From Octopus sinensis (taxonomy: Eukaryota), in the NCBI RefSeq assembly GCF_006345805.1, contig NC_043015.1, positions 42,718,001 through 42,782,000 of the forward strand: a stretch of DNA of 64,000 nucleotides, given 5' to 3'. The first letter of the stretch is position 1, and every line of letters starts with the position of its first letter. Under the pieces are notes generated by a model, which saw only the letters and a program-made list of their open reading frames with translations, ran no database searches and was not told where the DNA came from. The translations under genes were made by a program, and so were the position numbers. Of this stretch, positions 15,371-58,727 are shown in pieces.

Positions 15371-15402
<32 letters not shown>

Positions 15403-32455: not shown

Positions 32456-32473
32456 ACCTACTGCAGAAGGGAT

Positions 32474-32505
<32 letters not shown>

Positions 32506-36811: not shown

Positions 36812-37105
36812 ATGGCCGTTATACAAAACATTATGGAGGGAGATCGACCGAAAAGCTTGGCCGAGTTCAAAGAAATATTCAATAAATGCATTGACCAGTA
36901 TTTAACAGACACTCCCACCGATTGTGTCATCTCGCAAGAGAAAGCTGGACGAATCTTGAAAGTCCTTCAGAACGATCCAGACTTTTCTGACTCGGAAATC
37001 ACGTCTTATGTGAAGCAGGACAAAATCCAACTCCAAGATTTCCCTTTACTTCAATTAAAGAATGTCTTGTGTACAGTGAAAAAGGGCCGGAAAACCGCAA
37101 ATAGG
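36812..37105 (+). CDS. Integrase-derived gene, coding exon 1 (KRBA2/SCAND3/NOL4-like N-terminus)
   Basis: 98-codon non-repetitive ORF MAVIQNIMEG...YVKQDKIQLQDFPLLQLKNVLC...ANR; donor gttcgt, phase 0; a possible acceptor tctttag about 17 nt upstream of the ATG suggests a 5' UTR exon further upstream. Confidence 0.8.
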
Positions 37106-37211
37106 GTTCGTTGAGTTTTAATTTGTTGTTAATGATCGCGTTGGTTTGTGTTTGGACCGTGGAAATTATGGATTGCCTCGGCGAACAAATAAACACATCT
37201 AATGTACAGTT

Positions 37212-37614
37212 TTAACCTCGGTGTGTGAACGTATGCGTGTGTGTCACTGTATATGTGTGTGTGACTATATGTGTGTATGTGAATGTATATGTGTGAATGT
37301 AACCACTGTGTGTGTGAGTATGCGTGTGAATGTAACCACTGTATGTGAGCGTATGCGTGACTATGTGTATATGTGAATATATATGTGTGACTAACCACTG
37401 TGTGTGAGTGTGCGTGTGACTGTATATGTGTGTATGTGAATATATATATATGTGTGAATGTAACCACTGTATGTGAGCGTATGCGTGTGTGTGACTATAT
37501 GTGTGTATGTGACTGTAACCACTGTGTGTGTGTGATTATGCGTGTGAATGTATATGTAATGGTACAAAAATATATGTGTTTATATCATCTTAGTCTTCTG
37601 TTTGTTCACTTTTA
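37212..37614 (-). repeat. Right arm of the same inverted repeat (internal CA-rich module expanded)
   Basis: ttaacctcggtgtgtg...gaatgtatatgtaatggtacaaaaatatatgtgtttatatcatcttagtcttctgtttgtt. Confidence 0.88.
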
Positions 37615-37736
37615 AGGGACATTTTGGGGATAATTTTACTTGCATAAAATAATTGCAACGTTGCTCTTAATTTCGTTTGGTATTAAATCTTTTAGTTATG
37701 GCAAAAACTTTTACTTTTTTCCCCGGGACGTCTCTG

Positions 37737-38424
37737 TATGTCATTACGGGATTTTAAATTTTGGCCACAAGTCCAGCAATTTCGGAGTAGTTGGGGGTAA
37801 GTCGGTTGCATCGGGCCCCAGAGTTCGACGGGTACTTACTTATTTTGTCGATCCCCGAGAGGATAAAAGATCAAGTCGTTCTCGGCTGAATTTGAACTCA
37901 GAACTTCGCTAAGCATTTTTTTCCTGGTGGGTTAACGAGTCTGCCAGCTTGCGGCCCGCTTCGCGTATTAATTGAAATAAATATTATAAGACCCGTGTGT
38001 GTAATTTTGATTGGAGTCAGATTTTCGTTTACGCATAATTATTTATATAAAGAACTAATAAGGAATTACAAAGTTGTAATTATGTCATTACGGATTTTAA
38101 ATTTTGGCCACGAGCCCAGCAATTTCGGAGTAGTTGGGGGTAAGTCGGTTGCATCGGGTCCCAGAGTTCGACGGGTACTTACTTATTTTGTCGAACCCCG
38201 AGAGGATAAAAGATCAAGTCGATCTCGGCTGAATTTGAACTCAGAACTTCGCTAAGCATTTTTGCCTGGTGGGTTAACCAGTCTGCCAACTTGCGGCCCG
38301 CTTCGCGTATTAATTAAAATAAATATTATAAGACCCGTGTGCGTAATTCTGATTGGAGTCAGCTTTTCGTTTACGCATAATTAGTTATATAAAGAACTAA
38401 TAAGGAATTACAAAGTTGTAATTA
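37737..38424. repeat. Recent tandem duplication, 344 bp period
   Basis: tcattacggattttaaattttggccac at 37741 and 38085; copies differ only by scattered substitutions. Confidence 0.92.
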
Positions 38425-39506
38425 TTTGTACAATTATTATAAATATGATGAATGCTAAAACTATTTGAAGAATCTAATGTTGAAATTGATATTTAGAAAA
38501 GTTTTCAAATGTATTGAGTTTCTCTCTCTCCAGATATTTTTTCGTCTTTTGCGAAAATGGGTTATATTTTATTTTTTGTGTGTGTGTGTACGTTTTGTTG
38601 TTGTTGTTTTTTTTTCTTTTAGATTAACATGAAAATCGTGGTTTTGTTGTTGTTTTGGTTTTGTAATCGTATATATTGGCGGTTTTTTGGGTTATGATCA
38701 CAAACTAAAACTGAAAACCGATATTGATTTTCGGCGGGGTAGAGAAAATCGTATTTTGATTTTTTGGGAGGAGGGGTCTTTTTCATTTTTATTTGTTTTT
38801 TTTTATTTCTTTTTTTTTTTTTTTGAGAATTGAAATCTCTGTATTTTTTGAAATAGGATTTTCAAAAAACAAATTCAAAAAAAATTTTTTTTTAAATAAC
38901 AAATGATGGGTGGAGTAAAAATTTTAATTATAAAAATTTTAGTTCTCGTTTTTGTTTTTTTTTTGTCTTTTTTGCACACTTGTAATCTCCACTGTTGTTG
39001 GAAATCTAAAAAACCAAAGAAATTTTTGAAGAAGAAACTAAAAATAAAAAAGAAACGGTGGTGGGAGGGGACTCTATTCAACAGCTTTGCCTTTATATTC
39101 CCTGTAATATCAGCTTCAAATTTTGGCACAAGGGCAGCGATTTCAGGGCATGGTATTAAGTCAATTACATCGACCCCAGTCAGCACTGGATTAACCATTA
39201 AAAGGAAGGATGAGGCGGGGGGGGGGGCACCACAGAAATAGTAAATGGTTTATACCACAAAAGACATCACTTTCAACTTGCTAAAATAACATTCAGGATG
39301 CCTTTATCTCTACTAAGTACAGAGGCAGATGTGTTGGCGCAGGAGAGGCTGTGTGGTAAGTAGCTTGCTTACCAACCACGTGGTTCTGGGTTCAGTCCTA
39401 CTGTGTGGCACCTTGGGCAAGTGTCTTCTACTATAGCTTCAGGTCAATCAAAGCTTTGTGAGTGGATTTGGTAGACGGAAACTGAAAGAAGCCTGTCGTA
39501 TATATG

Positions 39507-39539
<33 letters not shown>

Positions 39540-39849
39540 ATGTTTGTGTCTGTGTTTGTCCCCCCAACATCGCTTGACAACCAATGGTGGTGTGTTTACG
39601 TCCGCATAACTTAGCGGTTCGGCAAAAGAGACCAATAGAATAAGTACTGGGCTTACAAAGAATAAGTCCTGGGGTCGATTTGCTCGACTAGAAGAAACAG
39701 CTAAAGTCCAAACCACTAATTATGGATAAATTCTCGAAGGGAATGAAAAATAAAAACATTTACCATCTATTTCCTGGACTAATTTTTCTATACACTAGGC
39801 CACTGGTAGTAAAAATTTCTAAAATCTTTATTACCCTGATATTATTAAT

Positions 39850-39882
<33 letters not shown>

Positions 39883-40552
39883 GTGTATGTATGTTTATAT
39901 ATATATATGTGTGTGTGTATAATTATATATATTCATCATCATTTAACGTCTGTTTTCCATGCTAGCATGGGTTGGACGGCTCGACCGGGGTCTGGGAAGC
40001 CAGGAGGCTGCACCAGGCTCCAGTCTGATCTGGCAGTGTTTCTACAGCTGGATGCCCTTCCTAACACCAACCACTCCGGGAGTGTAGTGGGTGCTTTTTA
40101 CGTGCCACCGGCACGGAAGCCAGTCAAGGCAGCGCTGGCATCAGCCATGTATGGATGATGCTTTTTTAGGTGCCAGGGGAGGCTGGCAACGGCCATGATC
40201 AGTTGGTGCTTTTTACGTGCCACTGGCACAGAAGCCAGTCAAGGCAGCACTGGCATCGGCCACGTTCGGATGGTGATATATATGTTTGGGTATATGTTAG
40301 TCTTGACATTATGTTATGCCTGTCAATGTCGTACAAGCAGTGCCATTCATTTCCAGTCTTCCTTGAAAAACATGTCCAGTCGTATGGAAACATTGCCCTA
40401 CTTGGAAACAAGAAGAGAGTTAAGTGGCAGGAATGGCCAAAGATTAATCTGCCTCAACGAATTTCATTTGACCCATGCAAGCATGAGTTTCACCGTTAAA
40501 ACAAAATATTTCAAGCCACTTGATGTTTCTGTATAATTTCCGTTTTTTGCAG

Positions 40553-40681
40553 CTTAATGATGACTTGTTTGGACGATTCCGGCGTGTCGTGCTCAAAGAA
40601 GAATTCTTTGACATGATCTACAAAGCACACAGCCAACATGGCAGCAGAAATCACATAGGCTTTGAGAAGACAATATTTCAA
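40553..40681 (+). CDS. Integrase-derived gene, coding exon 2 (HH half of the H2C2 zinc-binding domain)
   Basis: ttttttgcag acceptor, gtagga donor, 129 bp; RRVVLKEEFFDMIYKAHSQHGSRNHIGFEKT resembles the integrase zinc-binding region. Confidence 0.88.
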
Positions 40682-41171
40682 GTAGGATCTTCTTTATATT
40701 CCTTCTTGCAAATTTCATTCTTTGCTTTTTTGATGCCATATTTCTCTTCAAATGCCCTACTTCTGTATAACTCATTCTCTCTTCCTCCCCCTCTATCCCT
40801 CCCCTTCTATCCTTCCCACTCTCTTCCTCCCACTCTCTCCCTCCCACTCTCTTCTTCCCACTCTTTCCCTTCCTCTCTCTTTCTCCCTCTCTATCCCCCA
40901 CTATTTCCCTCCTCTCTGGCCCTCCCTCTCTATCCCTCCCACTCTCTCCTCTATCCCTACCTCGCTATCTCCTACTCTCTCCCTCTTTTCTCTTCCTCCC
41001 ACTCTCTTCCTTTTCTCTCCCCCACTCTCTCCTCTCTATCCCTCCTACTCTTTCCACCTCTCTATCCCTCCCACTCTCTTCTTCCCTTCTCTCTCTCTCT
41101 CTCTCTCTCTCCCTCTCTCTCTCCTTCCTCTCTCTCTAATTCTTTTTCCCATTTTCTTTGTTCCTCTTTAG

Positions 41172-41798
41172 TTGAAACGCAATTATTCACACATCCCCTG
41201 CGAGGTGGTGCTGAAGTTCATGAAGATGTGTCCAGTCTGCGCCGGTTCCGTGGCCGAAGAGAACATCTCCCTCTTCTGTCTGAAATATGAAGACGACATC
41301 CCTGCCGACCCAAAGTGCCAACAGAACCCGGGAAAATACATCAAGAAAGAAAAACCGAAAAAGGTGAAGAAATCACCGACAACGATGAGGAAGGCGGCTC
41401 GAGCGAAGGCCAAAACCACGACAACAACAACAACAACAGTCAAAGCAAAAACAAAAACGAAGGTTACATCAGCGAAAAAGACAAAAGCGACAGCAAAAAA
41501 GACAGAGACATCAACACGAAAAGCAAAGAGGACATCAACAGCGATGACAACCGCAACAACAAGAGAAACGACTTTAGCTCGTCAACCCAAAGCTAACACC
41601 AATATCAAAATAAGCAATAAGATTTTTGGAGAGAGACCATCACAGCAAGATCACGACTACGTCCGCACCCGACATCATTTACCAATTACATATTCATTGG
41701 CAGGACCCAAGAATAGCTCTGTACCAAATTTCAGAGATTATACTAAGAACCAGCGCGTGCATGTTCTAAGGGCAAGTTACTTTATGGCTGTTGGCAGA
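41172..41798 (+). CDS. Integrase-derived gene, coding exon 3 (CxxC half of the zinc finger plus a K/A/T-rich insert)
   Basis: ctctttag acceptor after a long pyrimidine tract, gtgagt donor, 627 bp open, phase 0/0; LKRNYSHIPCEVVLKFMKMCPVC. Confidence 0.88.
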
Positions 41799-41844
41799 GT
41801 GAGTTGTTTAAATTTTTATATTTTTCTGTGTTTTTTTTTTCAGT

Positions 41845-42021
41845 TCTATATTTAAGAGATGAGGAATTATGTACACTATTTACATTATTTACATTTGACG
41901 GATATTTGTCCTCATTTTGTTTGTTGTTAACAATGTTTTGGCTGATATACTCTCCAGCCTTTGTCAGGTATCTTGGGAAAATTTCAAACTGGGGTTCTCA
42001 TTCCTAAGATATTTTTCAATG

Positions 42022-42060
<39 letters not shown>

Positions 42061-42219
42061 TATGTCTAACTTTCGCTTTACAAGTTGGCTCCAAGTCTCA
42101 CCCAGAGACCTCAAGAGACAACAGGTTGGAAGTTCATGTTGTTGTTATGCCTAGTGTGCCATATATTGGGGCGGGGGGTTGTACTAGTGAATGTCCAAAA
42201 AAAAAAAACGAAAATTAAA

Positions 42220-42256
<37 letters not shown>

Positions 42257-42600
42257 CCTGTGGGATGAAGTTACAATAATAGACAGAGAACACCACTGGA
42301 AAATACGAAAACTAAAAGAAGCAGCACATATGCTAAGCAGACTGAGTGCAGATATGAATAGCATATGGGAACCAGTATTAAGGAAGGATAGGAAAATATT
42401 AGATTTATAAGCCCTAAAAATTCGCTCCATAATTGCCCACAGGCATAACCCCAAGATTCCGAGTTCAATTCCTGGCAGTGACCTGAATAATAATAATAAT
42501 AATAATAACATCATAAAATACCTTAGGAATGAGAACCCAGGTTCGAAATTTCCCCCAGATACCTGATGAAGGCTGGAGGGTGTATATCAGCCGAACCGTT
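41845..42600. mobile_element. Penelope-like element relic: GIY-YIG C-terminus plus pLTR (+) with an inverted pLTR copy (-)
   Basis: WDEVTIIDREHHWKIRKLKEAAHML..SRLSADMNSIWEPVL at about 42260-42385; 41935-42055 is the reverse complement of 42485-42598; CTGATGA-AGGCTG..CAGCC-GAA motif. Confidence 0.75.
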
Positions 42601-43578
42601 TTGCTTTTGTTATTCTTCATACTCTTCAATACCCTGCTATTCAAGATTTGGGAGTTTTTATAATTTTCATATGTAACTACTCCTTTTTTTCTCTCCTTGT
42701 TGTTTGATACTCAATAATTTCACATGGAGGAGGCGTGTGTGGCTTAGTGGTTAAGCTGTTGGACTCATGGTTGTAAGATTGTGGTTTTGATTCCCGGACC
42801 GGGCAGTGTGTTGTCTTCTTCAGCAAGATACTTCACTTCATGTTGCTCCAGTCCACTCAGCTATAGAAATGAGTTTAGCCTGGGGAGGGATGGGCTCCAC
42901 CAGGCTTTCTCGCCCTATATATGCAACATAGCTGCAGTGTCCAAACGACCCCCAAGGGGTTAAGGGACTTGTTATAATAGTAATTTCAGCCTATACAATC
43001 AATATATATCATCATCGTTGTTTAACATCCATTTTCCATGCTGGCATGGGTTGGACGATTTGACCGAGCCAGCGACTGTACCAGGCTCCAATCTAATCTG
43101 GCAATGTTTCTACAGCTGGATGCCCTTTCTAATGCCAACCACTTTGAGAGTGTAGTGGGTGCTTTTTACATGCCACCAGCACAGGAGCCAGCCAGTCAGG
43201 CCTGGCATCAATCACTTTCAGATAGTGCTTTTTATGTGCCACCTGCATGGGCATTGATCACATTCAGATAGTGCTTTTTACATGTCACTTGCACAGGGGC
43301 CAGAGGGAGCTAGCATCGACCACATTTGGATGGTGATTATATATAATAATAATATTGTTTAACTCTATTTGATTATTTATTTAACTATTATCATTAACCT
43401 GAAGATTGACTTTAAATTTAATTCAAATTTACTTCAATTGAATTTAAACTTAATTGTAATTCGAATTTAATTGTAGCCATGAAATGCACGTAGTGTTTTT
43501 ACTTATTATATTATATATTTATCATTCACTTTATACTTTTTGAGATCTAGTTATATGTTATTTTTTTTTTTTAAATTC

Positions 43579-43643
<65 letters not shown>

Positions 43644-43665
43644 TGTTATATTTGTCATTTTCCAG

Positions 43666-44053
43666 GTAACCATCATTGATATCAAGGAGCTGCAAGCTGA
43701 AACTGTGCCATCTAACCAGTTTACACTAGTGGTACATTACGTTGACCTCTGGTCAAAGTACAGCGTCTTCTGGCCATTGTGTAAGAAAGACATCAGTGAA
43801 CTGGCATTGGGCATTGCCAAAAACGTATTCGCCTACTTTGGCGCTCCAAGACAGTTAATCTACAATGGCTGCACCATGCAGGCTGCCGAACAACTGGAAG
43901 AGGTGCTTCGTGTGTGGTCATCCCAAATTAATGTTACCACAAGTATCTTAGAAGATCCATTGGCGTCATCAGGACCATTACATTGGAGAATTTTTGAAGA
44001 TCTGAAAACCCTTCCGCAAGACTCTTGGGAAAGTCATCTCTCAAAGTTACAAT
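43666..44053 (+). CDS. Integrase-derived gene, coding exon 4 (rve-like integrase core, catalytic residues altered)
   Basis: tttccag acceptor, gtaaat donor, 388 bp; VTIIDI...HYVDLWSKYSVFWPL...FAYFGAPRQLIYNG aligns by eye with QVDLIDM...HYQD..TK...GAP..LQSDNG of KRBA2/SCAND3-type integrases. Confidence 0.9.
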
Positions 44054-44083
44054 GTAAATTTAACAGTTTCTTATATATAACTA

Positions 44084-44370
44084 CTAGCAGTATCGCCTGG
44101 CGTTGCTCGGGTTTGTAAGGGAAATAACTATATAAGCATTTTAGAGAGTTACTTCCCTTATATAAAACCGAGCGAAAATGGATTAAAAATGGGGTAAAAT
44201 GATGGTAAATTTTTTTTAAATCATAGACGCGCACTAATACCCAGAAGGGCTCGATATGAATCACGACTATAAGATACCCGCTTTTGGTTAAACTGCACCG
44301 CAAAATGTGGGAGTGGTTAGGAATCTAAATTGGAGTAGACAGACTCTCACACAACTTCACTTATATATAT
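44084..44370 (-). mobile_element. Non-autonomous Helitron-like element, same 3' end as 16662-17057
   Basis: Minus strand ends acaaacccgagcaacgccaggcgatactgCTAG|t. Confidence 0.7.
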
Positions 44371-45111
44371 AACGATATAGTTAGAAACCAATATGCATGT
44401 TTGTGCTTATATGTATGTATGAATATATATCATCATCATCATTGGCAGTGTTTCTACAGCTGGATGCCCTTCCTAACGCCAACCACTCCGAGAGTGTAGT
44501 GGGTGCTTTTTACATGCCACTGACACAGAGGCTAGAGGGAGCTGGCATCGACCACATTCGGATGGTGCTTTTATGTGCCACCAGCACGGGAGCCAAACTA
44601 TATAGGCGTTAGGAAGGGCATCCAGCTGTAGAAACTCTACCAGATCAAGACTGGAGCCTGGTGCAGCCATCTGGTTGCCAGCCCTCAGTCAAAACCGTCC
44701 AACCCATGCTAGCATGGAAAGCGGACGTTAAACGATGATGATGATGATGATGATGTATATTGTGAAGGCACATAATCCAGTGGTTAGAGCATCGGGCTTA
44801 CAATCATGAGATAGTGAGTTCCATTCCTAGACTGGGTTGTATGTTGTGTTCTTGAGCAAGGTTCTTTATTTCACGTTGTTCCAGTTCACTCAGCTGTTGG
44901 AATGAGTTACGGCATCACTGGTGCCAAGCTGTATCAGCCTTTGCCTTTCCTTTGGATAACATCGGTGGCGTAGAGAGGGAAGGCTGATATGAATCAGTGA
45001 CTGCTGGTCTTCCATAAAAACAACCTTGCCAAGATTTGTGCCTTGGAGGGAAACTTTCTAGGTGCAATCCCACGGTCATTCATGACTGAAGGGGTCTTTA
45101 TATGTATATTA

Positions 45112-45241
45112 ATGACGTGTAGGGGACACCGTATCTTGTTCTGCTCTCATAATATACTATAAGGTATATTATAAATACGTTTAATAAACATTGTAGCATA
45201 TTATGTTTGCAGAACAAAATACGGTGTCCCCTACACGTCAT
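45112..45241. mobile_element. Short MITE or hairpin, 33-bp TIRs
   Basis: atgacgtgtaggggacaccgtatcttgttctgc / gcagaacaaaatacggtgtcccctacacgtcat. Confidence 0.85.
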
Positions 45242-45247
45242 ATTTTC

Positions 45248-45437
45248 GGAGTAAAAATTTTTGCCAACATAGCATGGCAGTCCTGGTTTAGGACGAATGT
45301 TGCTGTAATTTAGCCCCAGGAAACATCATCTCCAGCTTGCTATACGACACGATCTGTGCCCTTATTTTTTCGAACAAGGGAATTGAGCACCCCCACTCAG
45401 GACTGCCATGTTATGTTGTGGCAAAAATCTTTGCTCC
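45248..45437. mobile_element. Second adjacent MITE or hairpin, about 38-bp TIRs
   Basis: ggagtaaaaatttttgccaacatagcatggcagtcctg / caggactgccatgttatgttgtggcaaaaatctttgctcc. Confidence 0.8.
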
Positions 45438-45519
45438 AAAGTAATGTTGCTGAATATCTCACGTTGTGAGATTTAAAAATAGTAATCTATTAATATATTT
45501 TCGTTCAAGCTTCAAGTAT

Positions 45520-45850
45520 AGTGGGAGGGACCTTTGTTGGATGAAATAAGTAAGAGTAGTGTAGTAGGAAGGGCCATTTGTTGGCTGAAATAAATAAGTA
45601 GTAGAATGGTGGGAGGGTCCTTAAGTAGCAGTAGGAGTATAGTGGGAGGAGCCTTTGTTTGATGAAATAAGTAACAGTAGTGTAGTGGGAGGGTTCTTAA
45701 GTAGCAGCAGCAGTATAGTGGGAGGGGCCTTTGATGGCTGAAATAAGTAACAGTAATGTAGTAGGAAGGGCCATTTGTTGGCTGAAATAAATAAGTAGTA
45801 GAATAGTGGGAGGGTCCTTAAGTAGCAGTAGTATTGTGGGAGGGTCTTTT
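45520..45850. repeat. Degenerate minisatellite (agtatagtgggaggg...tttgttggctgaaataagtaa)
   Basis: Repeated 35-40 bp module with about 180 bp higher-order repetition. Confidence 0.85.
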
Positions 45851-45964
45851 CTTGGCTCACATTTTAGCTAAAGGGCAGTTCATAGTTGACTACAGACTTT
45901 AGACTTAGCTGCAAGGCCTTCATCTGATGCCCTAAATCATTCCATATTTCACTTGTCTTTTCAG

Positions 45965-46078
45965 ACTTAGCCAATACAAAGTTTGTGAAAACCCATGGTC
46001 GCATCACACCATACGAGGCTGTATTCGGTCACATGCCCTTAACAGAAACGTTTGTTAGTCAATCTGATACCCAGAGCA
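45965..46078 (+). CDS. Integrase-derived gene, coding exon 5 (end of the integrase core)
   Basis: ctttttcag acceptor, gtaagt donor, 114 bp, phase 1/1; YLANTKFVKTHGRITPYEAVFG matches the integrase TPYEAxFG motif. Confidence 0.88.
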
Positions 46079-47462
46079 GTAAGTACCCAGTTATTTTTAC
46101 AGCCCTTCATTAATCTTATGTTGTTGTTCTTCTTTCTCTCTCTATCTTCATCTTCTTCCTCTTCCTTCCATTACCCTCTTCTCTTCCTTTTATCTTCATC
46201 AACCCTTTTTTTTTTGTCAAGACCCGGCAGGACAAGTGAGACCATAACCCATGGCCTCTACCTGGGATGTAGCCAGTCCACTTATGCATACCTTTCCTTC
46301 TTGGGGCACAAAACTCTACTTGTGAAGACCTGTTGAGGCAAGTGAGAATCGATCAATATCAATGGAAATTGTAGCCGGTGGCACCTAAGCAAACCATCCG
46401 AACTGGGCGTTGCCAGCGCCGCCCCGGCGGGCCTCCGTACCGGTGGCACGTAAAAAGCACCATCCGATCGTGGCCGTTGCCAGCTTCGCCTGGCTCCCCT
46501 GCTGGTGGTGCATAAAAAGCACCATCCGACCGTGGCCATTTGCCAGCCTCGCCTGGCCCCCGTGCTGGTGGCACATAAAAAGCACCATCCGACCGTGGCC
46601 GTTTGCCAGCCCCGTCTGGCAACTGTGCCAGTGGCACGTAAAAGAGCACCCACTACACTCACAGTGTGGTTGGCGTTAGGAAGAACATCCAGCTGTAGAA
46701 ACACTGCCAGATCAGACTGGAGCCTGGTGCAGCCTTCTGGCTTCCCAGACCCCAGTTGAACCGTCCAACCCATGCTAGCATGGAGAGCGGACGCTAAACG
46801 ATGATGATGATGATGATGATTCTCATTTCTTATCACAATTGTCTTCCTTCCCTTGCAGTTAGGAATTTCTCTTCCTAACTGCATGGTTTGGGGCCTAGTG
46901 CTACCACCACCTTTTCATCATCACCTCTTCCAATGCCTCCTCCCCTCTTAAAAGTTTTTTATCTTGCAAGTACTTGGTGACTCTGTCCGTGCAGGTGCCA
47001 CTTAAAAGCATCCAGTCCACACTATAAAGTGGTTGGTGTTTGGAAGGACATCCAGCTGTAAAAACCTTGCCAGAACTGACCTCACCTGTGCTTGTGCCAC
47101 ATAACTATGATGATAACAGTACATACATATGTGTGTGTGTGCTTTTTTTTGTTTTTTTATTTCTTTTACTATGTTTTTCAGTCATTTGACTGCAGCCATG
47201 CTGTAGCACCACCTTTAGTCAAACAATAATCGACCCCTGGACTTATTCTTTGTAAGCCTAGTACTTATTCTATCGGTCTCCTTTTGCCGAACCACTAAGT
47301 TGCGGGGATGTAAACACACCAATATCGGTTATCAAGCAATGGTGAGGGGGGGGAGAAACACAGACACACAAATACATATATATATACACACACACACGCG
47401 CATATATATATATATAATATATATATATACACATATGTACATATATATATATACATATGTAC

Positions 47463-47517
<55 letters not shown>

Positions 47518-47538
47518 ATATAATATATATATATATAC

Positions 47539-47579
<41 letters not shown>

Positions 47580-48785
47580 ATCTATCTACCAAATCCACTC
47601 ATAAGGCTTTGGTCAGCCTGAGGCTATAATAGAAGACACTTGCCCAAGGTGCCCTACGCAGTGGGACTGAACCCGCAACCATGTGGTTGGGAAGCAAACT
47701 TCGTACTACACGGCCACACCTGCGCATATATACAATATGTTTTAGGTGCATAATGAAATAAATGATTAAATGTTTTAACAATCACCATTTTTGGGAGATT
47801 TTTGTTTTTTCCATCATCCTCATCATTTTAAGTTCCCTGTCTCCATGACTGTGTGGGAGTCAGATGTAATTTGATGAGGCAGATTTTTATTTTTCTGTGG
47901 CCGGATGCCCTTCCTGTCGCTGACCCTCCTTTGTTTTCAGCCGAGGTAATATTTCCAGACATGTTTTTGCAGAAGATTGGAAATGAATGACACCGCTTGT
48001 AAGACAGTGGGTCTCATTTACGACTATCACAAGATGTCAAGAAAAGAGACCCTACGCATACACACACACATATAATATACAGCTGGCATTCATCTACTAA
48101 TACATTCCCAGGACATTGGTCTACCGAGGAAGACACTTTTCTAATGCGCCAAACAGTGGAACTTAACCCCAAAACCACATATTTACAAGGCAAACTTCTT
48201 AACTGCTCAGCCATTGCTGTACCTAATTATAAAATAAACATCTCAAAAGAAAAATGTTACCTCACCCCCCGGCCACAAAAACATCAGTGCTACAGTCACC
48301 TTTGTAGTTAATAATATATTTATCCGGTGGCAAGCTGGCAGAAACGTTAGCATGCTGGGCGAAATGCTTATTGGTATTTCGTCTGTCTCTACGTGCTGAG
48401 TTCAAATTCTGCCGAGGTCGACTTTGCCTTTTATCCTTTCGGGGTCGATAAATTAAGTACCAGATACGCACTGGGGTCGATGTAATCGACTTAATCCCTT
48501 TGTCTGTCCTTGTTTGTCCCCTCTATGTTTAGCCCCTTGTGGGCAATAAAAAACAAAAATATATATTTATCCGTCGTGAGCTTGCCGTTCATCCTTTTGG
48601 GGTCGATTAAATAAGTTCCATTTATGCACTGGGGTCAATGTAATCGACTTAATCCCTTTGTCTATGCTTGTTTGTCCCCTCTATGTTTAGCCCCTTGTGG
48701 GCCATAAAGAAATAAATATTTATCCGTCGCCTTGGCATCTGTGTAGTTACTAAATTTTATCTTCTTGCTGATTTCTCTCCCCCAG

Positions 48786-49076
48786 AGACCCCTGCCAATG
48801 GGAACATGACCAATGTCAGGAAAAAGCAACGAAGTTCTTCTGGGAGCAAAGGATCAAAGGCCTCCACTGCTGGTGACTCGGTCCCTGCTAACGCCAGCAG
48901 CAACACTTCCAACGATGCCAATTCGGGGGTAGTGTACGAAGCCCAGCTAGGCCCCCTCCCGTCGCCGCCTTATCCTGTCGCCTGCACCATCAACATTGCC
49001 AACAGAAGTCCAAGGTCTCTCCTGCCCAGTACCCTGACCGTGCTGCAGCAGACAACAGCACCGACACCCATGTCTG
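48786..49076 (+). CDS. Integrase-derived gene, coding exon 6 (S/T/P-rich, predicted disordered)
   Basis: tttctctcccccag acceptor, gtaacg donor, 291 bp, phase 1/1, open frame with higher GC than the flanks. Confidence 0.78.
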
Positions 49077-49282
49077 GTAACGCAAATCAGTTGATAAACG
49101 CTTCTACTACCATTGCTGTTGATGTTGTTAGTGTTTTGTGTGTGTGTGTGTGGGTAGGTGTGTGTAGACAGACAGGTGGTAGGTAGGTAGATTGGTAGGT
49201 AGGTAGGTAGGTAGGTAGGTAGGTAGATAGGTAGGTAGGTAGGTAGGTAGCTAGGTAGGTAGGTAGGTAGTAGGTAGGTAGG

Positions 49283-49334
<52 letters not shown>

Positions 49335-50517
49335 CAGACAGATAGACAACACAGACAGACAAATGATAGATAGATAGATAGACAGACAGGTAGACAACAT
49401 AAGTAAGACAGACATATAGATGACATAAAATAGATAGATAGACAGACAGACAGATAGGTAGGTGCATAGACAGACAGACAGGTAGAAAGATAGAATGATA
49501 GACAGACAGACAGATAGATAGACAAATAGACAACACAGGTAAGACAGAGAGGTAGATACACAGATAGATAAATAGACAAATAGACAACACAGGTAAGACA
49601 GACAGGTAGATAGATACACAGATAGATAGATAGACAAATAGATAGGTAGGTGCAGGTATGGCTTTGCATTTAAAAAGCTTGCTCCCCAACCATGCGGTTT
49701 CAAGTTGAGTTCCACTGGATGGCAGCTTAAACTAATGTCTTCTATTAAAGCCCTAGGCCAACCCAATCCTTCTGAATGGATTTGGTGGAACAGAAACTGA
49801 AGGAAGCCCGATGTGTGTGTGTGCGTGTGTGTCCTCGTTTTGACCTCACGTGTTAATTCTAAATGACTGTCACTGCAATACAAAGCTTTGTCATTCGTGT
49901 CCAGCATTCTACAGAAATATGCTTGACCATGGGACGACGTTGCCTTGCTTGGAAGCAGGTGAGGGTTGCTGACAGGAAGAGCGTCCAGCCATGGTAGAAA
50001 AAAAAGAATCTTCCTCTTCAACGAATACTGTCCAACCTACAAAAGCTCGGGGAAAGTGGACAACGACAATGCAGTGTTGTGATGGATTACCTTGGGGAGG
50101 GGAAAAAACGTTATTGATAATGTTTGCATGAAATTTAAGTGTTCTCACATTACAACATCGTCATCATCATCATCACCATCATCATCATAACCACAATCAT
50201 CACCACCATCATCGTCATCATCATCATCATCAACATCATCATCATCATCATCATCAACATCATCATCACCATCATCATCATCACCATTATCATCATCCCC
50301 ATCAACGTCATCGTCATCAACATTATCATCACCATCAACATCACCATCATCATCATCATCACATCATCATCATCACCACCACCATCATCACCACCACCAT
50401 CATCACCACCATCATCAACATCATCATTGGACAAGTGTCTTCTACTATAGCCTCAGGCCAACCAAAGCTTTGTGAGTGGATTTGGTAGACAGATACTGAA
50501 AGAAGCCCATCGTATAT

Positions 50518-50548
<31 letters not shown>

Positions 50549-50898
50549 GTGTGTGTTTGTGTGTCTGTGTTTGTCCCACCAACATCGCTTAACAACCAAT
50601 GGTGGTGTGTTTACATCCCTGTAACTTAGCGGTTCGGCAAAGAGACCGATAGAATAAGTACTAGGCTTACAAAGAATAAGTCCTGGGGTCGATTTGTTCA
50701 ACTAAAGGTGGTGCTCAGCATGGCGGCAGTCAAATGACTGAAACAAGTTAAAGTGTAAAAGAGTCTGTTAATTTTCCTTTTTCTTTTTCTTTTCCCTTCC
50801 TCTCCTTTCCTCAAACCCTTACTCCTGTTCATTACTCCTTCCTTTCTCCAAACACCTGTGTTTTTCCAACACGGTTTTTTTTTTTTATTTGTTTGCAG

Positions 50899-51207
50899 AT
50901 TCGCTGACGTATGTCGTGTCCAAGACGGAACCGACCAGCGATTCCGATACGCTGCTGATGGAGGTGGACAACAACAACACTGTCATGACAACCGCTGCGA
51001 CATCGCCAATGATGACAGCCTGCTCCTCTGACTCCCTCTCCGTTGCCGCCAACACCACCGTCACGGATTCTGCGACCACTTCTATAGGTGACATTCAAGT
51101 CAAGATGGAAACCGTTGATGATACGAGCAATGAACTAGCTGAGATCAAAACAAGCGATGCCATACACAACCAAGCTACAATATCTGCCATTGAAACAGTT
51201 GATGCAG
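50899..51207 (+). CDS. Integrase-derived gene, coding exon 7 (S/T/D-rich)
   Basis: ttgtttgcag acceptor, gtaaat donor, 309 bp, phase 1/1, open frame. Confidence 0.78.
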
Positions 51208-52304
51208 GTAAATTTAATTAAATCCTACCATATTTGATGGCACCTGAAAAATGCCAAGAGATATTAGGCTTGATACATATTCAGGTGCAAATAATATTCA
51301 GTGCATAGAAGTATGTAATATTTAACCTGTCAGCCTTCATCATCATCATCATCATCATCGTTTAGCATCCGTTTTCTGTGCTAGCATGAGTTGGACGGTT
51401 CGACTGGGGTCTGGGAAGCCAGAAAGCTGCACCAGGCCCAGTCTGATCTGGCAGTGTTTCTACAGCTGGATGCCCTTCCTAACGCCAACCACTCCGTGAG
51501 TGTAGTGGGTGCTTTTTACGTGCCAGACGAGTCTGGCAAACGGCCACGATCGGATGGTGCTTTTTATGTGCCACCGGCACAGGGGCCAGACGAGGCTGGC
51601 AACGGCCACGAACGGATGGTGCTTTATATGTGCCGCCGGCACGAGGCCAGTCGGGGCGGCGCTGGCAACGGCCACGTTTGGATGGTTCTCTTACGTGCCA
51701 CTGGCGCTAGTATCACAGCTGCAATTTCCATTGATGTTGATCGATTTCGATTCTCACTTGCCTCAACAGGTCTTCACAAGTAGCGTTTTGTGTCCCAAGA
51801 AGGAACGGTATGCATAAGTGGACTGGCTACATCCCGTGTAGAGGCCATGGGTTATGGTCTCACTTGTCCTGCTGGGTCTTCTCACGCACAGCATACTTCC
51901 AAAGGTCTCATCATCAACATCATCATTTAACATCCGCTTTCCATGCTAGCATGGAATGTTTTGAGGGAGATTTAGCTGTTGCTTTGCAGCCATTTCAGTG
52001 GCTTCATAGAGGCTCCCTCATTTGCTCATGGATATATTCATTTACTGTTATTGTTGCTTAAATACCAGTTCAGCACAAATAGTGCATTCCATCAGTGACC
52101 ATTCCATCATTTTTCCTCTTTAATTATTTTTGGTTAATTTTCTTTATTTAAAACATTAATGTTTTGGGGCGGGGGGAAGGTTTAGTGACTATTTACAAAC
52201 TGGAGTCTGGTGCAGCTTACCAACTCTGGTCAAACCGTCCGTGGGATGGGCTACTCGACCTGAAGAAAATTCTAACTGGGCCCCACTTGTAAGGTCATGT
52301 GCTG

Positions 52305-52515
52305 TTTATCTTGATATGAGATCTGTTTTTTTTATTACCCATGTGGGCCAACAAATCTTGATATGAGATCTGTTTTTTTTATTACCCATGTGGGCCAACA
52401 AATCTTGATATGAGATCTGTTTTTTTTATTACCCATGTGGGCCAACAAATCTTGATATGAGATCTGTTTTTTTTTTATTACCCATGTGGGCCAACAAATC
52501 TTGATGTGAGATCAC
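52305..52515. repeat. About 46-bp tandem repeat (4 copies) inside a SINE body
   Basis: atcttgatatgagatctgttttttttattacccatgtgggccaacaa x4. Confidence 0.9.
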
Positions 52516-55054
52516 CATGTCATGCACATACGGTTGTAATGCATGTGCCTGGTGTAACCCTTATCAGACGGGTAGTCATGACGGGTATACTGGGCTTCGT
52601 ATATTTTACCCCAGTGTCGCTTTCATGGCATGCACTGCTCTCGATTGAACCATGGACAATAAATGTTAAACGATGATGATGATGATGATGATGTACCGAA
52701 GGCAGTTTAATCAACCAGTACCCTGCAAGGCAGTACTCCAGCATAAATCACAGAGCAATTACGAAAACAATTAAAATAACAGTATTTATTTCTTGTTTGT
52801 AATAACGTCTACAGGAGTGGCTGTGTGGTAAGTAGCTTGCTAACCAACCACATGGTTCCGGGTTCAGTCCCACTGCGTGGCATCTTGGGCAAGTGTCTTC
52901 CGCTATAGCCCCGGGCTGACCAATGCCTTGTGAGTGGATTTGGTAGACGGAAGCTGAAAGAAGCCTGTCGTATATATGTATATATATATATATATGTGTG
53001 TGTGTGTCTGTGTTTGTCCCCCTAGCATTGCTTGACAACTGATGCTGGTGTGTTTACGTCCCCGTCACTTAGCGGTTCGGCAAAAGAGACCGATAGAATA
53101 AGTACTGGGCTTACAAAGAATAAGTCCCGGGGTCGATTTGCTCGACTAAAGGCGGTGCTCCAGCATGGCCGCAGTCAAATGACTGAAACAAATAAAAGAG
53201 TAAAAGAGAGTTGTCTCCCTTAATTGTTCTTTTTTTTTTTAGCAAGCCTTCCTATGTTTAAAGGTGTTCAAACTATAACCGTCTTTAAATTCATTTGTTT
53301 TTAATGGCAGGATGTAATTTATGGGAGGTTTGGTTGCTATTTTTAGCAGGTTGTGTTTCCATATAGTGATTGATTCCTTCTTTCGATCGGATTCGTTCGT
53401 TGTTGTTCTTATTGTTGTTGTCTCCATTGCATCCTTGATAAAAAGGAGTTCCAAGTTGTGACCACCCTTCGTTTGCAGAATCGCTTGCATGCCGGACTAA
53501 AAAGCTGTTTGGCATTTCGTCCGTCTTTATGTTCTGAGTTCGAATTCCACTGAGGCCGACTTTTGCCTTTCATCCTGTTAGGGCCGATAAAATAAGTACC
53601 AGCCGAATACTGGGGGGAGGGGGTCGACGTAATCGACTCTCCCTCCCCCACTCCCCCCAAAATTCCAAGCCTTATTGTTGTTGTTGTTGGTGTTTTGCTC
53701 CTTGACAACCGTAAGTGAGCAAGACTTAATCAAAGACGCTCCAAGCCGTGGCCAGCCCTCATTGGCTCGGGTATACGTTGTGTAGTTTCACGTCAGCTTC
53801 GATCGAGCTGGTCTCTAATCAAATGCGTTCCAGCCGTAACCATCCCTCGTTGACATGGTTTATTATTGTTGTTTTGCTCACGTCAGACTCGATCAAGAAG
53901 ACCTTTTATCAGAAGCGTTCCAACCGTGACCCTCTCTCAGTTGCTCAGCGTTATCTATATTCATTTATTTATTTATTCTTAAAGTGGTAAGCTGGCAGAA
54001 GCGTTAGCACGCCGGGCGAAATGCTTAGCGGTATTTCGTCTGCCGCTACGTTCTGAGTTCAAATTCCGCCGAGGTCGACTTTGCCTTTCATCCTTTCGGG
54101 GTCGATAAATTAAGTACCAGTTACACACTGGGGTAGATGTAATCGACTTAATCCGTTTGTCTGTCCTTGTTTGTTCCCTCTATGTTTAGCCCCTTGTGGG
54201 TATTAAAGAAATAGGTATTTCGTCTGCCGCTACGTTCTGAGTTTTAATTCCGCCGAGGTCGACTTTGCCTTTCATCCTTTCGGGTCGATAAATTAAGTAC
54301 CAGTTACGCACTGGGGTCGATCTAATCGACTTAATCCGTTTGTCCTCTCTGTGTTTAGCCCCTTGTGGGTATTAAAGAAATAGGTATTTCGTCTGACGTT
54401 ACGTTCTGAGTTCAAATTCCACCGAGGTCGACTTTGCCCTTCATCCTTTCGGGATCGATAAATTAAGTACCAGTTGCGTACTGGGGTCGATCTAATCGAC
54501 TGCTCCCCTCGCCTCCCCAAAAATCTCGGACCTTGTGCCTAGAGTAGAAAAGAATATTTGTCCTCGCTGCATCGACAGCTTCAGTATGTTAAAGAGTTGC
54601 CTCCCTTATCCCCCTTCAGCTGTTTATTTTGTATCCAAGTAGGGAAGGCGGGAATTGGGTGATGGCCAATTTCTACAGCAACAAAAAAAACGCAGTAGAA
54701 AACATTGGTGAACTGAAATAACTTCATCGTCATCATCATCATGCTCCGATGTGGTGTAACAACCAATCCCCCAGCCGGTCGGGATTCTCAGTGCTGGTTG
54801 TACTATTCATCCTTTCCAACGCTGAATGCGAAACGTGACTCATGAGACGTGATTTTTTCTCTGAGTCACCATCTCACCTTTGTAAGTCAATCCCCCCTCG
54901 CAAGATTACTCATTCACGGTAGCGAGGACTGAAGCGGCATGAAATGAAGTGTTTTGCCTAGTGGTTAGAGTGTTGTTCTCACGATCGCTAGGCCATGGTT
55001 TCGATTCTTAGAGATATGTTAGTGATTCATAAAATTTCAAAACAATAGAACAAT

Positions 55055-55475
55055 CGGATCTTTTCGGTTTGAACGGCAGTTTTTTTCTAGCGGTGTCATA
55101 TGAAATTGTCACCCATAATTATGACCCTAGTATCGATCTATTGCATTTCAATCTGTTTTAGGGTTAGTTAGGGTTAGGGGTGGGGGGAAGGGTATCTTTT
55201 TTTTTTCTTCAGAAATGTAAATAAACCCAATCTGTTTCCTAAACGAGGGACATATTCATACGGCACAGAATGTTTTCCACCTCAATAGACAGTCATTGAT
55301 TTGCAGAAATTGAAGAAAAAAAACCAACAAATATCTTAGAAACTATAGAATTTTCTCAATAAAGCCAAGAGAAAAAGATGTTTTATAAACACATTCTGCC
55401 AGTATACGAAGTTTAAAAGTGTTTAGTTATGTGGAAATTATTTTTAAAAACTGCAGTTCAAACCGAAAAGATCCG
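55055..55475. mobile_element. MITE-like element with 30-bp TIRs and an internal TTAGGG-like run
   Basis: cggatcttttcggtttgaacggcagttttt / aaaaactgcagttcaaaccgaaaagatccg; ttagggttagttagggttagggg at about 55158-55180. Confidence 0.75.
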
Positions 55476-55597
55476 AACAATCCATGAACACAATGGGAAC
55501 ACACTTAGGCTCCAGGGGTGTTTACAAGTTAATTCAACCCAACCTGGAGCCTATCATTTAAGTACTTGATTCTCTCCTAAATCCCTTAATATTGTAT

Positions 55598-55632
<35 letters not shown>

Positions 55633-58416
55633 AATTTATGTGAATATCAGTGTCAGACCTTTTTTCCAGAGATGCAATTAAACACACATTCGAACTTCCA
55701 TACAGTCATCATCGTTCATCATATAACGTCCGCTTTCCATGCTAGCATGGGTTGGATGATTTGACAGATGGCTGCACCAGGCTCCAATCTGATCTGGCAA
55801 AGTTTCTACAGCTGGATGCCCTTCCTAATGCCAACCACTCCGAGAGTGTAGTGGGTGCTTTTACATGTCACCGACATGAGGGCCAGTCAGGCGGTACTGG
55901 CAACGGCCGCGCTCAAATAGTGTTTTTTGCATGCCACCTGGGAGCCAGTCCAAAATGTATTCAGTCTGGCAACAGATGAGTATCATTTGAGGAATAGAGA
56001 AATCAGGAGTTATACATGAACTAATTCAAGTTTCATGCTCACATAGTGCAGTAATCAGGCAGGCTTGTATAGCATTCTGTGCTCATTTGAACAATTACTG
56101 GTTTGAGCATGGTAATCTATGCATGCCTGTCAAATTACTGCACTGTCTTAACATGAAACTTAAAGTAGCTCACATATAATTCCTGTATTCATTAAATTAT
56201 ATACATACACCACCATCATCATCATAGTTTAATGTTCACTTTCCATTTTGGCATGGTTTGGCCAGTTTGACTGAGATCTGACAAGCCAGTGGGCTGCACC
56301 AGGCTCCACTCTGATCTGGCAATGTTTCTACAGCTGGATGCCCTTTCTAACACCAACCACACTGAGAATGTAGTGGGTGCATTTTATGTGCCACCAGCTT
56401 AGGAGCCAATCAGGGGGCACTGGCATCAACCATGTTTGGATGGTGCATTTCACATGCCACCAGCACGGAAGCCAGTCTGGGGCACTGGCATCGACCATGT
56501 AAATATATGTATGTATGCATATGTGTGTATGTGTGTGTATATACCTATCATCATCATCATCATCATCATCATTTAACGTCCGCTTTCCATGCTAGCATGG
56601 GTTGGACGGTTCAACTGGGGTCTGGGGAGCCCGAAAGCTGCACCAGTCCAGTCAGATCTGGCAGTGTTTCTACAGCTGGATGATATATTCATCATGATAG
56701 ATCGGTAGCCACTACACATTTTTTTCTCTCCTTGTTTCTTTCTGTGTTCCTTTCTGTGGAAGAGCATAGGCTCGAAACGTAAAAGACTTTTTCAATTCCC
56801 GTGCGTTAAACTAATACATCTGTTTATTTTCTACACCACCTGTGTTCGTCTTTTGTTTTTTTCGTTAATTCTCCCTATATATATATATATATGGGTGTAT
56901 GTTAAAATATTGCAGTTATTTGAAATCAATTTTTAGAGTAACAACTAAACATTTGTTGGTGGTGTTACTCTGTGTTGAATCTAGAATCAAATTCATTGTG
57001 AAAATTAAGTTGGTTAGGATAAGGCTTTCTTCCCACAAGGGGACAAATATTATTTCTCTTGCTGAACAAGATGATGGGCGAAATTCGAAGTCCCAGTTAA
57101 GTCTGTCTTCACAACAAATTCCTATAATACATATATATATTTATATGTTTTTATATATATATATTTTTTTTTTTAACTTGTTTCAGTCATTTGACTGTGG
57201 CCATGCTGGAACACCGCCTTTAGTCGAACAAATCGACCCCGGGACTTATTCTTAGTAAGCCCAGTACTTATTCTATCGGTCTCTTTTGCCGAAAGGCTAA
57301 GTGACGGGGACATAAACACAACAGCATCGGTTGTCAAGCAATGCTAGGGGAACAAACACAGACACACAAACACACATATATATACATATATACGACAGGC
57401 TTCTTTCAGTTTCCATCTACCAAATCCACTCACAAGGCATTGGTCGGCCCGGGGCTATAGCAGAAGACACTTGCCCAAGATGCCACGCAGTGGGACTGAA
57501 CCCGGAACCATGTGGTTGGTTAGCAAGCTACTTACCACACAGCCACTCCTGCGCCTATATATATATATAATATTTTATGTAAAATATAATACACACATAT
57601 GCAGATATATTATCATCATCATTATCATCGTTTAACGTCCGCTTTCCATGTTAGCATGGGTTGGACGGTTTGACGCAGGGCTGGTAAACCAGATGGCTGC
57701 ACCAGGCTCCAGTCTTGATCTGGCAGAGTTTCTACAGCTGGATGCCCTTACTAATGCCAACCACTCTGAGAGCGTAGTGGGTGCTTTTACATGCCACCGG
57801 CACGAGGGTCAGTCACATGGCACTGGCAATGACCACGCTCGGATAGTGCTTTTAGCACCCTACTAGCACAGGGCACAAGTGCCAGTAAGGCAATCACACT
57901 CGAATGGTGCCTTTTATGTGCCACTGGCACGGAAGCCGGTTACCCGCTCTGGCAACGATCACGCTCGGATGGTGCTCATGCCTGTCATCGAATTTCACTT
58001 AGATTTTGATTTTGATTATATATTATACATATCACCGTGATCACCGTGACCGACCAGGCTATCAGATGTTGTTACACATCGCTGGTTACAATGCGTTTCG
58101 CATTGTTTTAGCCATCAAATGACGCCACCCCGCTGTCTAAGCGAGCAGGCCAACAGAAGAAAGAGTGAGAGAAAGTGGCGAAAGAGTACAGCAGGGATCG
58201 CCACCACCCCCTGCCAGAGCCTCGTGGAGCTTTAGGTGTTTTCGCTCAATAAACACTCACAACGCCCAGTCTGGGAATCACGACCGCGAGTCCACTACCC
58301 TAACCACTAGGCCATTGCACCTCCATTATATTATATTATATTATATATTATACATATATATACATATATATATATATATACTTAGGTGTATTATCTTTTT
58401 TTTTTTTGTCTTTTAG

Positions 58417-58727
58417 CCATTTCAATGATCAAAATGCATCAGCTTGAGAAGGATAATTCCATAACCGATTCGACAAATAAAAAGAAAATTCTAAAGAAAC
58501 CAACTCTAAAACTACCACCTAGAAGCAAGAACACCAATTCCGCCAAAATACTGAAATGCTATCGATTCAAAGTCAAACAGAATCTTAAGACATATGCTCA
58601 CTACAAGGCCCGCAGTGCACAGCATAAAATAATCAATGAAGCGTTAGCAAACCTCGATCTGGTGGAACATGTCAGGGGTGCCCTTCCTGAATCTTCCGAA
58701 CCAAATCCAGATCCTCAACAGCCATAG
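58417..58727 (+). CDS. Integrase-derived gene, probable last coding exon (basic, KKKILKKP possible NLS)
   Basis: tgtcttttag acceptor, phase 1 compatible, open to TAG at 58725-58727, followed by AT-rich UTR-like sequence; linkage across the 7.2 kb intron is inferred. Confidence 0.65.

Follow-up and report, generated by a model that had tools for sequence, protein, structure and literature searches.

A coleoid host gene with a degenerate integrase core, probably domesticated from an intron-bearing Ginger2-type transposase gene

Which described genes come closest?

Domestication of Ginger-type integrases is a known route to genes, and the cases so far traced to Ginger2 have been mainly mammalian (SCAND3 and KRBA2), together with the fungal Fob1, with functions that are obscure. 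Here we discuss a clean further case, the gene LOC115222060 of Octopus sinensis, whose eight coding exons lie at 36812-58727 on the forward (+) strand of a 64,000-nucleotide stretch of contig NC_043015.1 (this whole stretch is called the window, and all positions are counted from its first letter). Our reading, to which we give a probability of about 0.8, is that this is a single-copy coleoid host gene domesticated from an intron-bearing Ginger2-type transposase gene, and the evidence supports the domesticated host gene that a first-pass annotation of the window had proposed. It would be an independent and old case, and one with clear inheritance of introns from a Ginger2-type transposon. Our literature search returned no paper on LOC115222060 and none on Ginger2-derived genes in cephalopods, while the databases label the product an 'uncharacterized protein' (NCBI) or name it 'Integrase catalytic domain-containing protein' (UniProt).

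SCAND3 (also known as ZBED9/ZNF452) and KRBA2, which Llorens et al. derive from Ginger2 transposases (PMC3575427), are alike in having a Ginger2-type N-terminal module, an H2C2 finger and a core ending TPYE.VFG, and in being single-locus genes under purifying selection. They differ in carrying a SCAN, KRAB or hAT-dimerisation domain, none of which was found when the octopus protein was scanned with Pfam, so that the orthologue test based on such a fused domain came out negative, and in being eutherian where the octopus gene is coleoid, with a domestication of its own. The octopus gene, for its part, has a destroyed Asp-Asp-Glu (DDE) catalytic triad, a long disordered C-terminus with alternative ends, and seven coding introns, four of them inherited. 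A second comparison is with Gin-1 and Gin-2 (GIN1), which derive from Ginger1 and share three conserved introns with the element Ginger1-5_HM, as described by Bao et al. (PMC2836005). There too a host gene keeps transposase introns, and the octopus gene has three (probably four) in common with a sponge element. However, Ginger1 transposases carry YPYY and GPY/F motifs, as do Gypsy integrases, and a pattern search of the 820-residue octopus protein found no GP[YF] and no YP[YF]Y, which is why we place its source in Ginger2 and not in Ginger1. Autonomous Ginger2/Tdd elements (PMC2836005) encode a homologous transposase with H2C2 finger and integrase core, but at the octopus locus there is one collinear copy with no terminal inverted repeats and no DDE triad left, extending over at least 22 kb and provided with added exons.

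The N-terminal region of NOL4 is also related, being homologous to the N-terminal domain plus His-His-Cys-Cys (HHCC) finger of the octopus protein (hhalign probability 98.9%, E 2.7e-17), the homologue used being an insect one (P0085, from Hermetia illucens, 'Nucleolar protein 4' in UniProt). The match is limited to this module, and the octopus gene is not an orthologue of NOL4, because the two proteins are only distantly similar (phmmer E 2e-4) and the octopus protein keeps the integrase core. The likeness suggests that NOL4 may be another old derivative of the same module, and our literature search found no paper linking NOL4 to integrases. In two gastropod proteins, P0033 (Elysia marginata, in a record named RihB) and P0061 (Nucella lapillus), the module is joined to a C2H2-like finger and a region that, by eye, resembles an inosine-uridine nucleoside hydrolase. 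This looks like a separate fusion or domestication, and a fusion of this type probably explains why the O. vulgaris orthologue has been named 'nucleoside hydrolase-like'.

Fob1p, the replication-fork-barrier protein of yeast, acts by binding DNA and not by transposition. For a transposase descendant that has given up catalysis and binds DNA, it may be the best functional parallel, the parallel being with a fungal protein and one of description, not of sequence. Fob1p has been placed in the Ginger2 branch (PMC3575427).

What marks it as a host gene?

The eight-exon model of the first-pass annotation stands in every detail. Exons of 294, 129, 627, 388, 114, 291, 309 and 311 nt join across seven coding introns, each of them GT-AG and of compatible phase, to give 2463 nt that encode 820 residues and end in the only stop. 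The translation is 100% identical to XP_036367335.1, isoform X2 of LOC115222060, recovered in the first protein search; that record starts 7 codons downstream of the model's ATG, at a methionine common with the start of the Sepia protein. The contrast drawn earlier between uninterrupted exons and repeat-rich introns is also borne out, since 0% of the exons, versus 42-81% of the introns, is repeated when the window is compared with itself by BLAST.

Conservation across cephalopods agrees with the earlier proposal of a cephalopod host gene. In O. bimaculoides, locus L001 is collinear with window positions 26.9-59.8 kb (a chain of 12.6 kb at 87.7% identity, including the upstream flank and the introns). 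Apart from exon 7, which falls in an assembly gap, its exons (1-6 and 8) are intact, with splice sites identical to those of O. sinensis. O. vulgaris also holds a copy and, among the proteins found, there is one locus per Octopus species. The orthologue of Sepia pharaonis (CAE1324920.1) has 817 residues and a gene span of about 102 kb, and it matches the octopus protein at 364 bits, against about 100 bits for the best non-cephalopod relative. Further decapodiform-type copies were found on two contigs of an ENA assembly and on one Logan contig. In the two ENA contigs exons 3, 4 and 5 match the octopus gene in intron positions and phases, and the cores of these two copies share 83% protein identity, with a synonymous divergence (dS) of 0.76 and a ratio of non-synonymous to synonymous divergence (dN/dS) of 0.12. 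Because orthologous exons with the same splice sites are present both in O. bimaculoides and in the decapodiform-type contigs, the open reading frames (ORFs) of the model are not chance ones.

Selection was measured between O. sinensis and O. bimaculoides by the Nei-Gojobori method, with exon 7 left out on account of the assembly gap. The overall dN/dS is 0.18 (dS 0.21; binomial p 6e-22), falling to 0.09 in the N-terminus plus HHCC finger, 0.10 in the core and 0.086 in exon 8 (p <= 4e-7 for these three conserved parts) and rising to 0.33 in the linker and 0.40 in exon 6. Every region has fewer non-synonymous changes than neutral expectation (binomial p 1e-6 to 1e-22), and the check that had been suggested against a value near 1 thus gives values far from it, at about 0.1 in the domains.

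The exons map onto the protein in an orderly way. Exon 1 (36812..37105, 294 nt, ending in phase 0) opens with the model ATG at 36812, has the Sepia-shared methionine codon at 36833 and encodes the N-terminal three-helix plus beta-hairpin domain (model residues 16-89), which AlphaFold predicts with a confidence (predicted local distance difference test, pLDDT) above 90; three orthologues of this exon (P0128, P0015 and P0041) run on into intron sequence at one and the same point. Exon 2 (40553..40681, 129 nt, phase 0) supplies the first half of the HHCC zinc finger, with the two His codons at 40628-40630 and 40652-40654, and exon 3 (41172..41798, 627 nt, phase 0) supplies the second half, with the Cys codons at 41229-41231 and 41238-41240, followed by a disordered lysine/threonine (K/T)-rich linker (about 41265-41774), after which the core begins. 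Exon 4 (43666..44053, 388 nt, ending in phase 1) encodes the greater part of this RNase H-like integrase core. The end of the core is encoded by exon 5 (45965..46078, 114 nt, phase 1 to 1), which does contain the TPYEAVFG expected there from the first reading of the window and is conserved in L001 and in both ENA copies, L002 and L003.

Where does the gene end?

Beyond the core come exon 6 (48786..49076, 291 nt, phase 1 to 1), a cassette exon encoding a disordered stretch rich in serine, threonine and proline, and exon 7 (50899..51207, 309 nt, phase 1 to 1), which encodes an acidic, threonine/serine-rich and equally disordered stretch and is the last exon common to all isoforms. Isoform X3 lacks exon 6, as do both O. 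vulgaris models. Exon 8 (58417..58727, 311 nt, stop at 58725-58727), which belongs to isoform X2, encodes a basic tail with a predicted helix. In its place, isoforms X1 and X3 and, in O. vulgaris, one of the models have a 175-residue tail bearing an EF-hand pair (Pfam EF-hand_7, E 9e-19), which makes exon 8 an alternative terminal exon, situated within the intron leading up to the EF-hand exons. The EF-hand tail is encoded nowhere in the 64-kb window, and its exons sit past base 64000, more than 12 kb beyond exon 7. As annotated, the gene is therefore not confined to 36812-58727, and is larger and more variable than first proposed. The EF-hand-bearing proteins in our set are P0002, P0004 and P0006, and the O. 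vulgaris record goes by the name 'calmodulin 5'.

A different account of these tails deserves to be taken seriously, even if we hold it to be somewhat less probable than its opposite: the EF-hand isoforms could be read-through products or annotation chimeras with a separate, calmodulin-like gene downstream, in which case the gene would end at exon 8. The Sepia orthologue has no EF-hand, the distance from exon 7 to the EF-hand exons outside the window fits a separate gene, and the strong constraint on exon 8 is what one would expect of a genuine end; however, the junction from exon 7 to the EF-hand exons has been predicted by two separate annotations, that of NCBI for O. sinensis and that behind the O. 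vulgaris records. A bolder idea, which takes the EF-hand splicing as real and which we regard as quite unlikely, is that octopods have thereby acquired a calcium-sensing form, in which splicing to the EF-hand pair would couple Ca2+ signals to a coleoid-wide, catalytically dead, Ginger2-derived regulator that recognises specific sequences in DNA or chromatin.

What kind of transposase did it come from?

The N-terminal domain, the HHCC finger and the RNase H-like core of integrase type are three modules of a Ginger2-type transposase, and the protein keeps all of them. When 1.84 billion representative proteins were searched exhaustively with phmmer, 103 relatives came up, typically aligning over residues about 26-160 and again over 335-500. 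Sponge and amphipod proteins are among them, as are proteins from fish, mussels and a mantis shrimp that bear the name 'SCAN domain-containing protein 3-like'; the best matches outside cephalopods carry this name, and the SCAND3-like proteins match at E 1e-22 to 1e-17. Among the 42 aligned family members, 26 match the Pfam family rve and 29 match Integrase_H2C2. When a cephalopod profile was aligned by hhalign to a profile of 20 ordinary relatives, the match covered residues 20-507 with a probability of 100% and E 8.7e-40. The first-pass annotation had spoken of a KRBA2/SCAND3/GIN-type architecture, and it is the SCAND3/KRBA2 part of this that phmmer, hhalign and predicted structure uphold; the GIN part falls with the missing Ginger1 motifs. 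A sequence search of the Protein Data Bank (PDB) gave no match, and a Pfam match to mucin was judged spurious and set aside.

One close relative, that of Mytilus edulis, is a 2.9 kb element whose terminal inverted repeats are 42 nt long and start with TGT, and which has a 4-bp duplication, AAGC, on its flanks. Ginger2 elements are characterised by TGTNR termini, by terminal inverted repeats that are about 50-180 bp long and by a 4-bp target-site duplication, and by the criteria of Bao et al. (PMC2836005) the mussel copy is a textbook Ginger2 element.

Structure prediction, another of the checks proposed at the outset, points the same way. AlphaFold2, run with the family alignment, gives pLDDT above 90 at residues 10-160 and 340-500 (P0001 numbering) and below 50 for nearly all else, the C-terminal half being disordered by this measure. 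The predicted core runs through three strands, a helix, a strand, a helix and a strand before it ends in helices, which is an RNase H-type order, and its best PDB matches in Foldseek are the catalytic cores of the integrases of mouse mammary tumour virus (MMTV), prototype foamy virus (PFV) and Rous sarcoma virus (RSV), with E about 1e-8 and a template-modelling (TM) score of 0.73-0.75 on target. Modelled alone, the N-terminal 166 residues reach a pLDDT of 90 and form the three-helix plus beta-hairpin domain followed by an HHCC helical domain.

Were the introns inherited with the transposase?

The first-pass annotation counted large introns in favour of a host gene, and noted that some Ginger transposons carry introns themselves. 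The latter is right, both from the literature (PMC2836005) and from the Mytilus and sponge elements analysed here, and it changes the weight of the former. We derived exact exon maps for the amphipod gene P0013, for P0020 (GCA_041734735.1), for the Mytilus element and for an element of the sponge Ephydatia, and compared intron positions in an alignment (A2) that had been made blind to introns. Octopus introns 2, 3 and 4, at columns 292, 559 and 753 and in phases 0, 0 and 1, coincide with introns of the amphipod gene, of P0020 and of the sponge element. Intron 1 (phase 0) lies in a variable linker and is at most 6 columns from an intron in the amphipod, P0020 and sponge genes, and from the single intron of the Mytilus element; in addition, exon 2 is 129 nt long in both the octopus gene and the sponge element. 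The sponge transposase has an intact DDE triad and several near-identical gene models, and on either side of the element lie inverted arrays of a 16-nt palindrome. Since an element with an intact triad has introns at matching columns and in matching phases (approximately so for intron 1), introns 1-4 were, on this alignment, inherited from the transposon and not gained after domestication, and introns 5-7 belong to the added C-terminal exons.

It follows that intron-richness is weaker evidence of domestication than it looks, because introns 1-4 came with the transposase gene. The marks of a host gene are instead that the introns have grown to repeat-filled kilobases and are conserved across cephalopods, and that the added C-terminal exons bring three more; to this extent the earlier argument from large introns survives, while the mere presence of introns counts for less in it. 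More widely, introns 2-4 have stayed at fixed positions in a Ginger2-type transposase gene between sponges and bilaterians, with intron 1 keeping its place to within a few residues, and a host gene has received them from it. This parallels the passage from Ginger1 to Gin-1/Gin-2 and counsels caution wherever intron-richness is taken as evidence of domestication.

The gene spans used for this comparison were 4001-5672 for the sponge locus L007 (Ephydatia muelleri), 3001-8232 for the amphipod locus L005 (Trinorchestia longiramus) and 2001-15632 for L006 (GCA_041734735.1). The genes at L005 and L006 carry additional introns as well as degenerate DDE motifs and extended C-termini, and may be independent domestications.

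What weighs against this reading, and how old is the gene?

Several observations weigh against the reading of a single-copy, domesticated and DNA-binding Ginger2 derivative, and they are best considered together. The protein itself has no Pfam match to rve (PF00665) and reaches 14.9 bits for Integrase_H2C2 (PF17921) against a cut-off of 25.5, so the HMMER check that had been recommended failed for both families, and homology needed profile-profile and structure comparison. The N-terminal model aligns with the PFV integrase N-terminal extension plus HHCC finger, and then with Ty3 and HIV-2 N-termini (probability 0.92-0.97, 2.2 Å over 94 columns), at E 0.35, which is not significant, and this predicted fold match gives weak support. 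Splicing is backed by two independent annotations and by splice-site conservation, that is, at the level of annotation, and there were no transcript-derived proteins among the matches of the word-index protein searches, which returned almost only Octopus entries (the second of these was probably swamped by low-complexity words, the Sepia protein being absent from its matches). Strict single-copy status is challenged in one lineage by L002 (ctg115155l) and L003 (ctg110776l), two distinct decapodiform-type copies in one assembly (ENA ERZ21867824), which are either paralogues in one genome or the product of a mixed sample. The K/T-rich linker, absent from Sepia, and the entire C-terminal half are unconserved between octopus and Sepia, and any functions relying on them must for this reason be lineage-specific. 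Nuclear location and DNA binding are things we infer. Lastly, in the neighbour-joining tree the cephalopod clade has 100% bootstrap support, but its sister group in about 75% of replicates consists of one or more long-branch, catalytically degenerate sequences (amphipod, Nucella, P0020), none of them above 22%.

A conserved C-terminal domain was considered and dropped, as the C-terminal halves of the octopus and Sepia proteins have no significant similarity to each other; comparison of octopus exon 8 with the Sepia C-terminus likewise gave none. Exon 1 of L002 is only 40% identical to that of Sepia, and the L002 and L003 loci share interspersed repeats.

The tree raises the question of whether domestication predates cephalopods altogether, with the gene belonging to one ancient host-gene family, protostome-wide or wider, whose other members would be the amphipod P0013, P0020 (GCA_041734735.1) and the Nucella proteins P0019 and P0044. 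We consider this unlikely. That the cephalopods join one or more of these genes in most bootstraps speaks for it, as does the finding that introns of the multi-exon P0013 and P0020 match octopus introns 2-4 exactly and come close to intron 1, and the DDE motifs of these genes also look degenerate. However, the same four introns occur in the sponge element, with its intact triad and its flanking inverted repeat arrays, so that shared introns are no proof of shared domestication, and the amphipod introns, once a candidate sign of an ancient host gene, had to be given up as such. In addition, the grouping involves only long branches and settles on no single sister, for which long-branch attraction is a plausible cause; at 65-75 bits, these genes resemble the octopus gene no more than ordinary transposase copies do; and the extra introns differ among these genes and are absent from octopus.

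Domestication most likely took place on the stem of the coleoids or at an earlier point in cephalopod history. The gene is common to octopods and decapodiform-type cephalopods, whose split dates to roughly 250-300 million years ago. Independence from the mammalian genes, which had been claimed from the start, follows from distribution: SCAND3 and KRBA2 are restricted to eutherian mammals (PMC3575427), and similarity outside cephalopods stays at or below about 100 bits, against 364 for Sepia.

Could the protein still be an enzyme?

The earlier remark that catalytic residues are altered is borne out. At the first Asp (canonical RVQIDLID), octopus has Thr (RVTIID, codon 43669-43671 in exon 4) and the decapodiform-type copies have Ser or Arg, in two independent MAFFT alignments and in hhalign. 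At the second (HSDNGREF), both methods give Asn in octopus (LIYNGC, codon 43864-43866) and Asp in the decapodiform-type copies (IIYDT). The Glu of QSQGLVE is a gap in MAFFT and hhalign, or a His when judged by motif register (SSGPLHW, codon 43981-43983). The decapodiform-type copies thus lack the first Asp and the Glu and may keep the second Asp. The zinc ligands H117, H125, C154 and C157, in contrast to the triad, are invariant or nearly so across the family, cephalopods included. As far as sequence can tell, the DDE triad is lost, the fold and zinc finger are kept, and the enzyme should be dead.

Could nuclease or recombinase activity nevertheless persist through a non-canonical site? The candidate residues would be D348 (P0001 numbering), two residues past the lost first Asp, the Asn or Asp at the second position and the His of GP(L/V)HW. 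The core is 57% identical between octopus and Sepia, with 95 of 178 columns invariant, the IID, Y(N/D) and GP(L/V)HW motifs are invariant or nearly so, and the decapodiform-type copies do have an Asp at the second position, all of which speaks for such a site. However, three alignments put a non-acidic residue at the first Asp, the catalytic Glu is met by a gap or, by register, a His, and octopods have lost the second Asp as well, which makes retained activity very improbable. We know of no integrase-family enzyme that works without the first Asp and the Glu.

What might a dead integrase do?

Under the reading of a domesticated host gene, the protein would no longer cut or join DNA and would transpose nothing; it would most likely act instead as a non-catalytic adaptor or regulator that binds DNA or chromatin in the nucleus. 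The N-terminal domain plus HHCC finger, which contact DNA ends in integrases, could be its DNA-binding part, and the dead core could serve as a scaffold or multimerisation surface, as has been proposed for other transposase-derived regulators. To these, lineage-specific disordered regions have been added, with predicted alternative C-termini in the form of the basic helical tail of exon 8 or the EF-hand pair. Basic clusters in the protein (KKEKPKK, RKAKR and KKKILKK) are candidate nuclear localisation signals. With the triad lost, the finger kept and the core strongly constrained, the evidence points towards an integrase fold that is used structurally or for binding DNA.

Is anything at the locus still mobile?

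No terminal inverted repeats, long terminal repeats or other direct repeats bracket the gene, in keeping with the absence of element-scale repeats noted at first pass, and the long inverted repeats within 30-64 kb all consist of paired members of multi-copy families of short interspersed repeats. Only one copy of the gene is present in the window, so the dispersed copies with terminal inverted repeats that would mark an active transposon are not in evidence there. That the gene is a decaying or recently active intron-bearing Ginger2 copy, stitched into a gene by annotation pipelines, is largely refuted and has next to no chance of being right, for although Ginger-type transposase genes can carry introns (PMC2836005, and the Mytilus and sponge elements) and transposon fragments abound around the gene, it has no terminal inverted repeats, its catalytic residues are lost in every cephalopod copy, its orthologue in O. 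bimaculoides is collinear, its splice sites are conserved across octopods and decapodiform-type copies, its dN/dS is 0.1-0.18 and its introns have expanded to kilobases, the Sepia gene reaching about 102 kb.

What else lies in the window?

Self-BLAST of the window found three families of short interspersed repeats with 14-24 copies each, and microsatellites are frequent; a scan for tRNA genes in the window found none. An N run, marking an assembly gap, lies at about 18.7-18.9 kb and is seen as X in ORFs at 18560-19121. Two ORFs, at 2784-3245 (+) and 34990-35475 (-), look by eye like the tails of ORF2 of non-LTR (long terminal repeat) retrotransposons; no such Pfam family matches them, and a sub-threshold AT_hook is the only Pfam match of the former. 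A mariner-type transposase fragment (Pfam Transposase_1, E 4e-25) occupies 32049-32480 (+) and is followed by a long low-complexity tract. At 17476-17580 (+) there is a full-length match to U6 spliceosomal RNA (Rfam RF00026, 49.1 bits against a gathering threshold of 44, E 2.7e-09), which could be a gene or a pseudogene copy.

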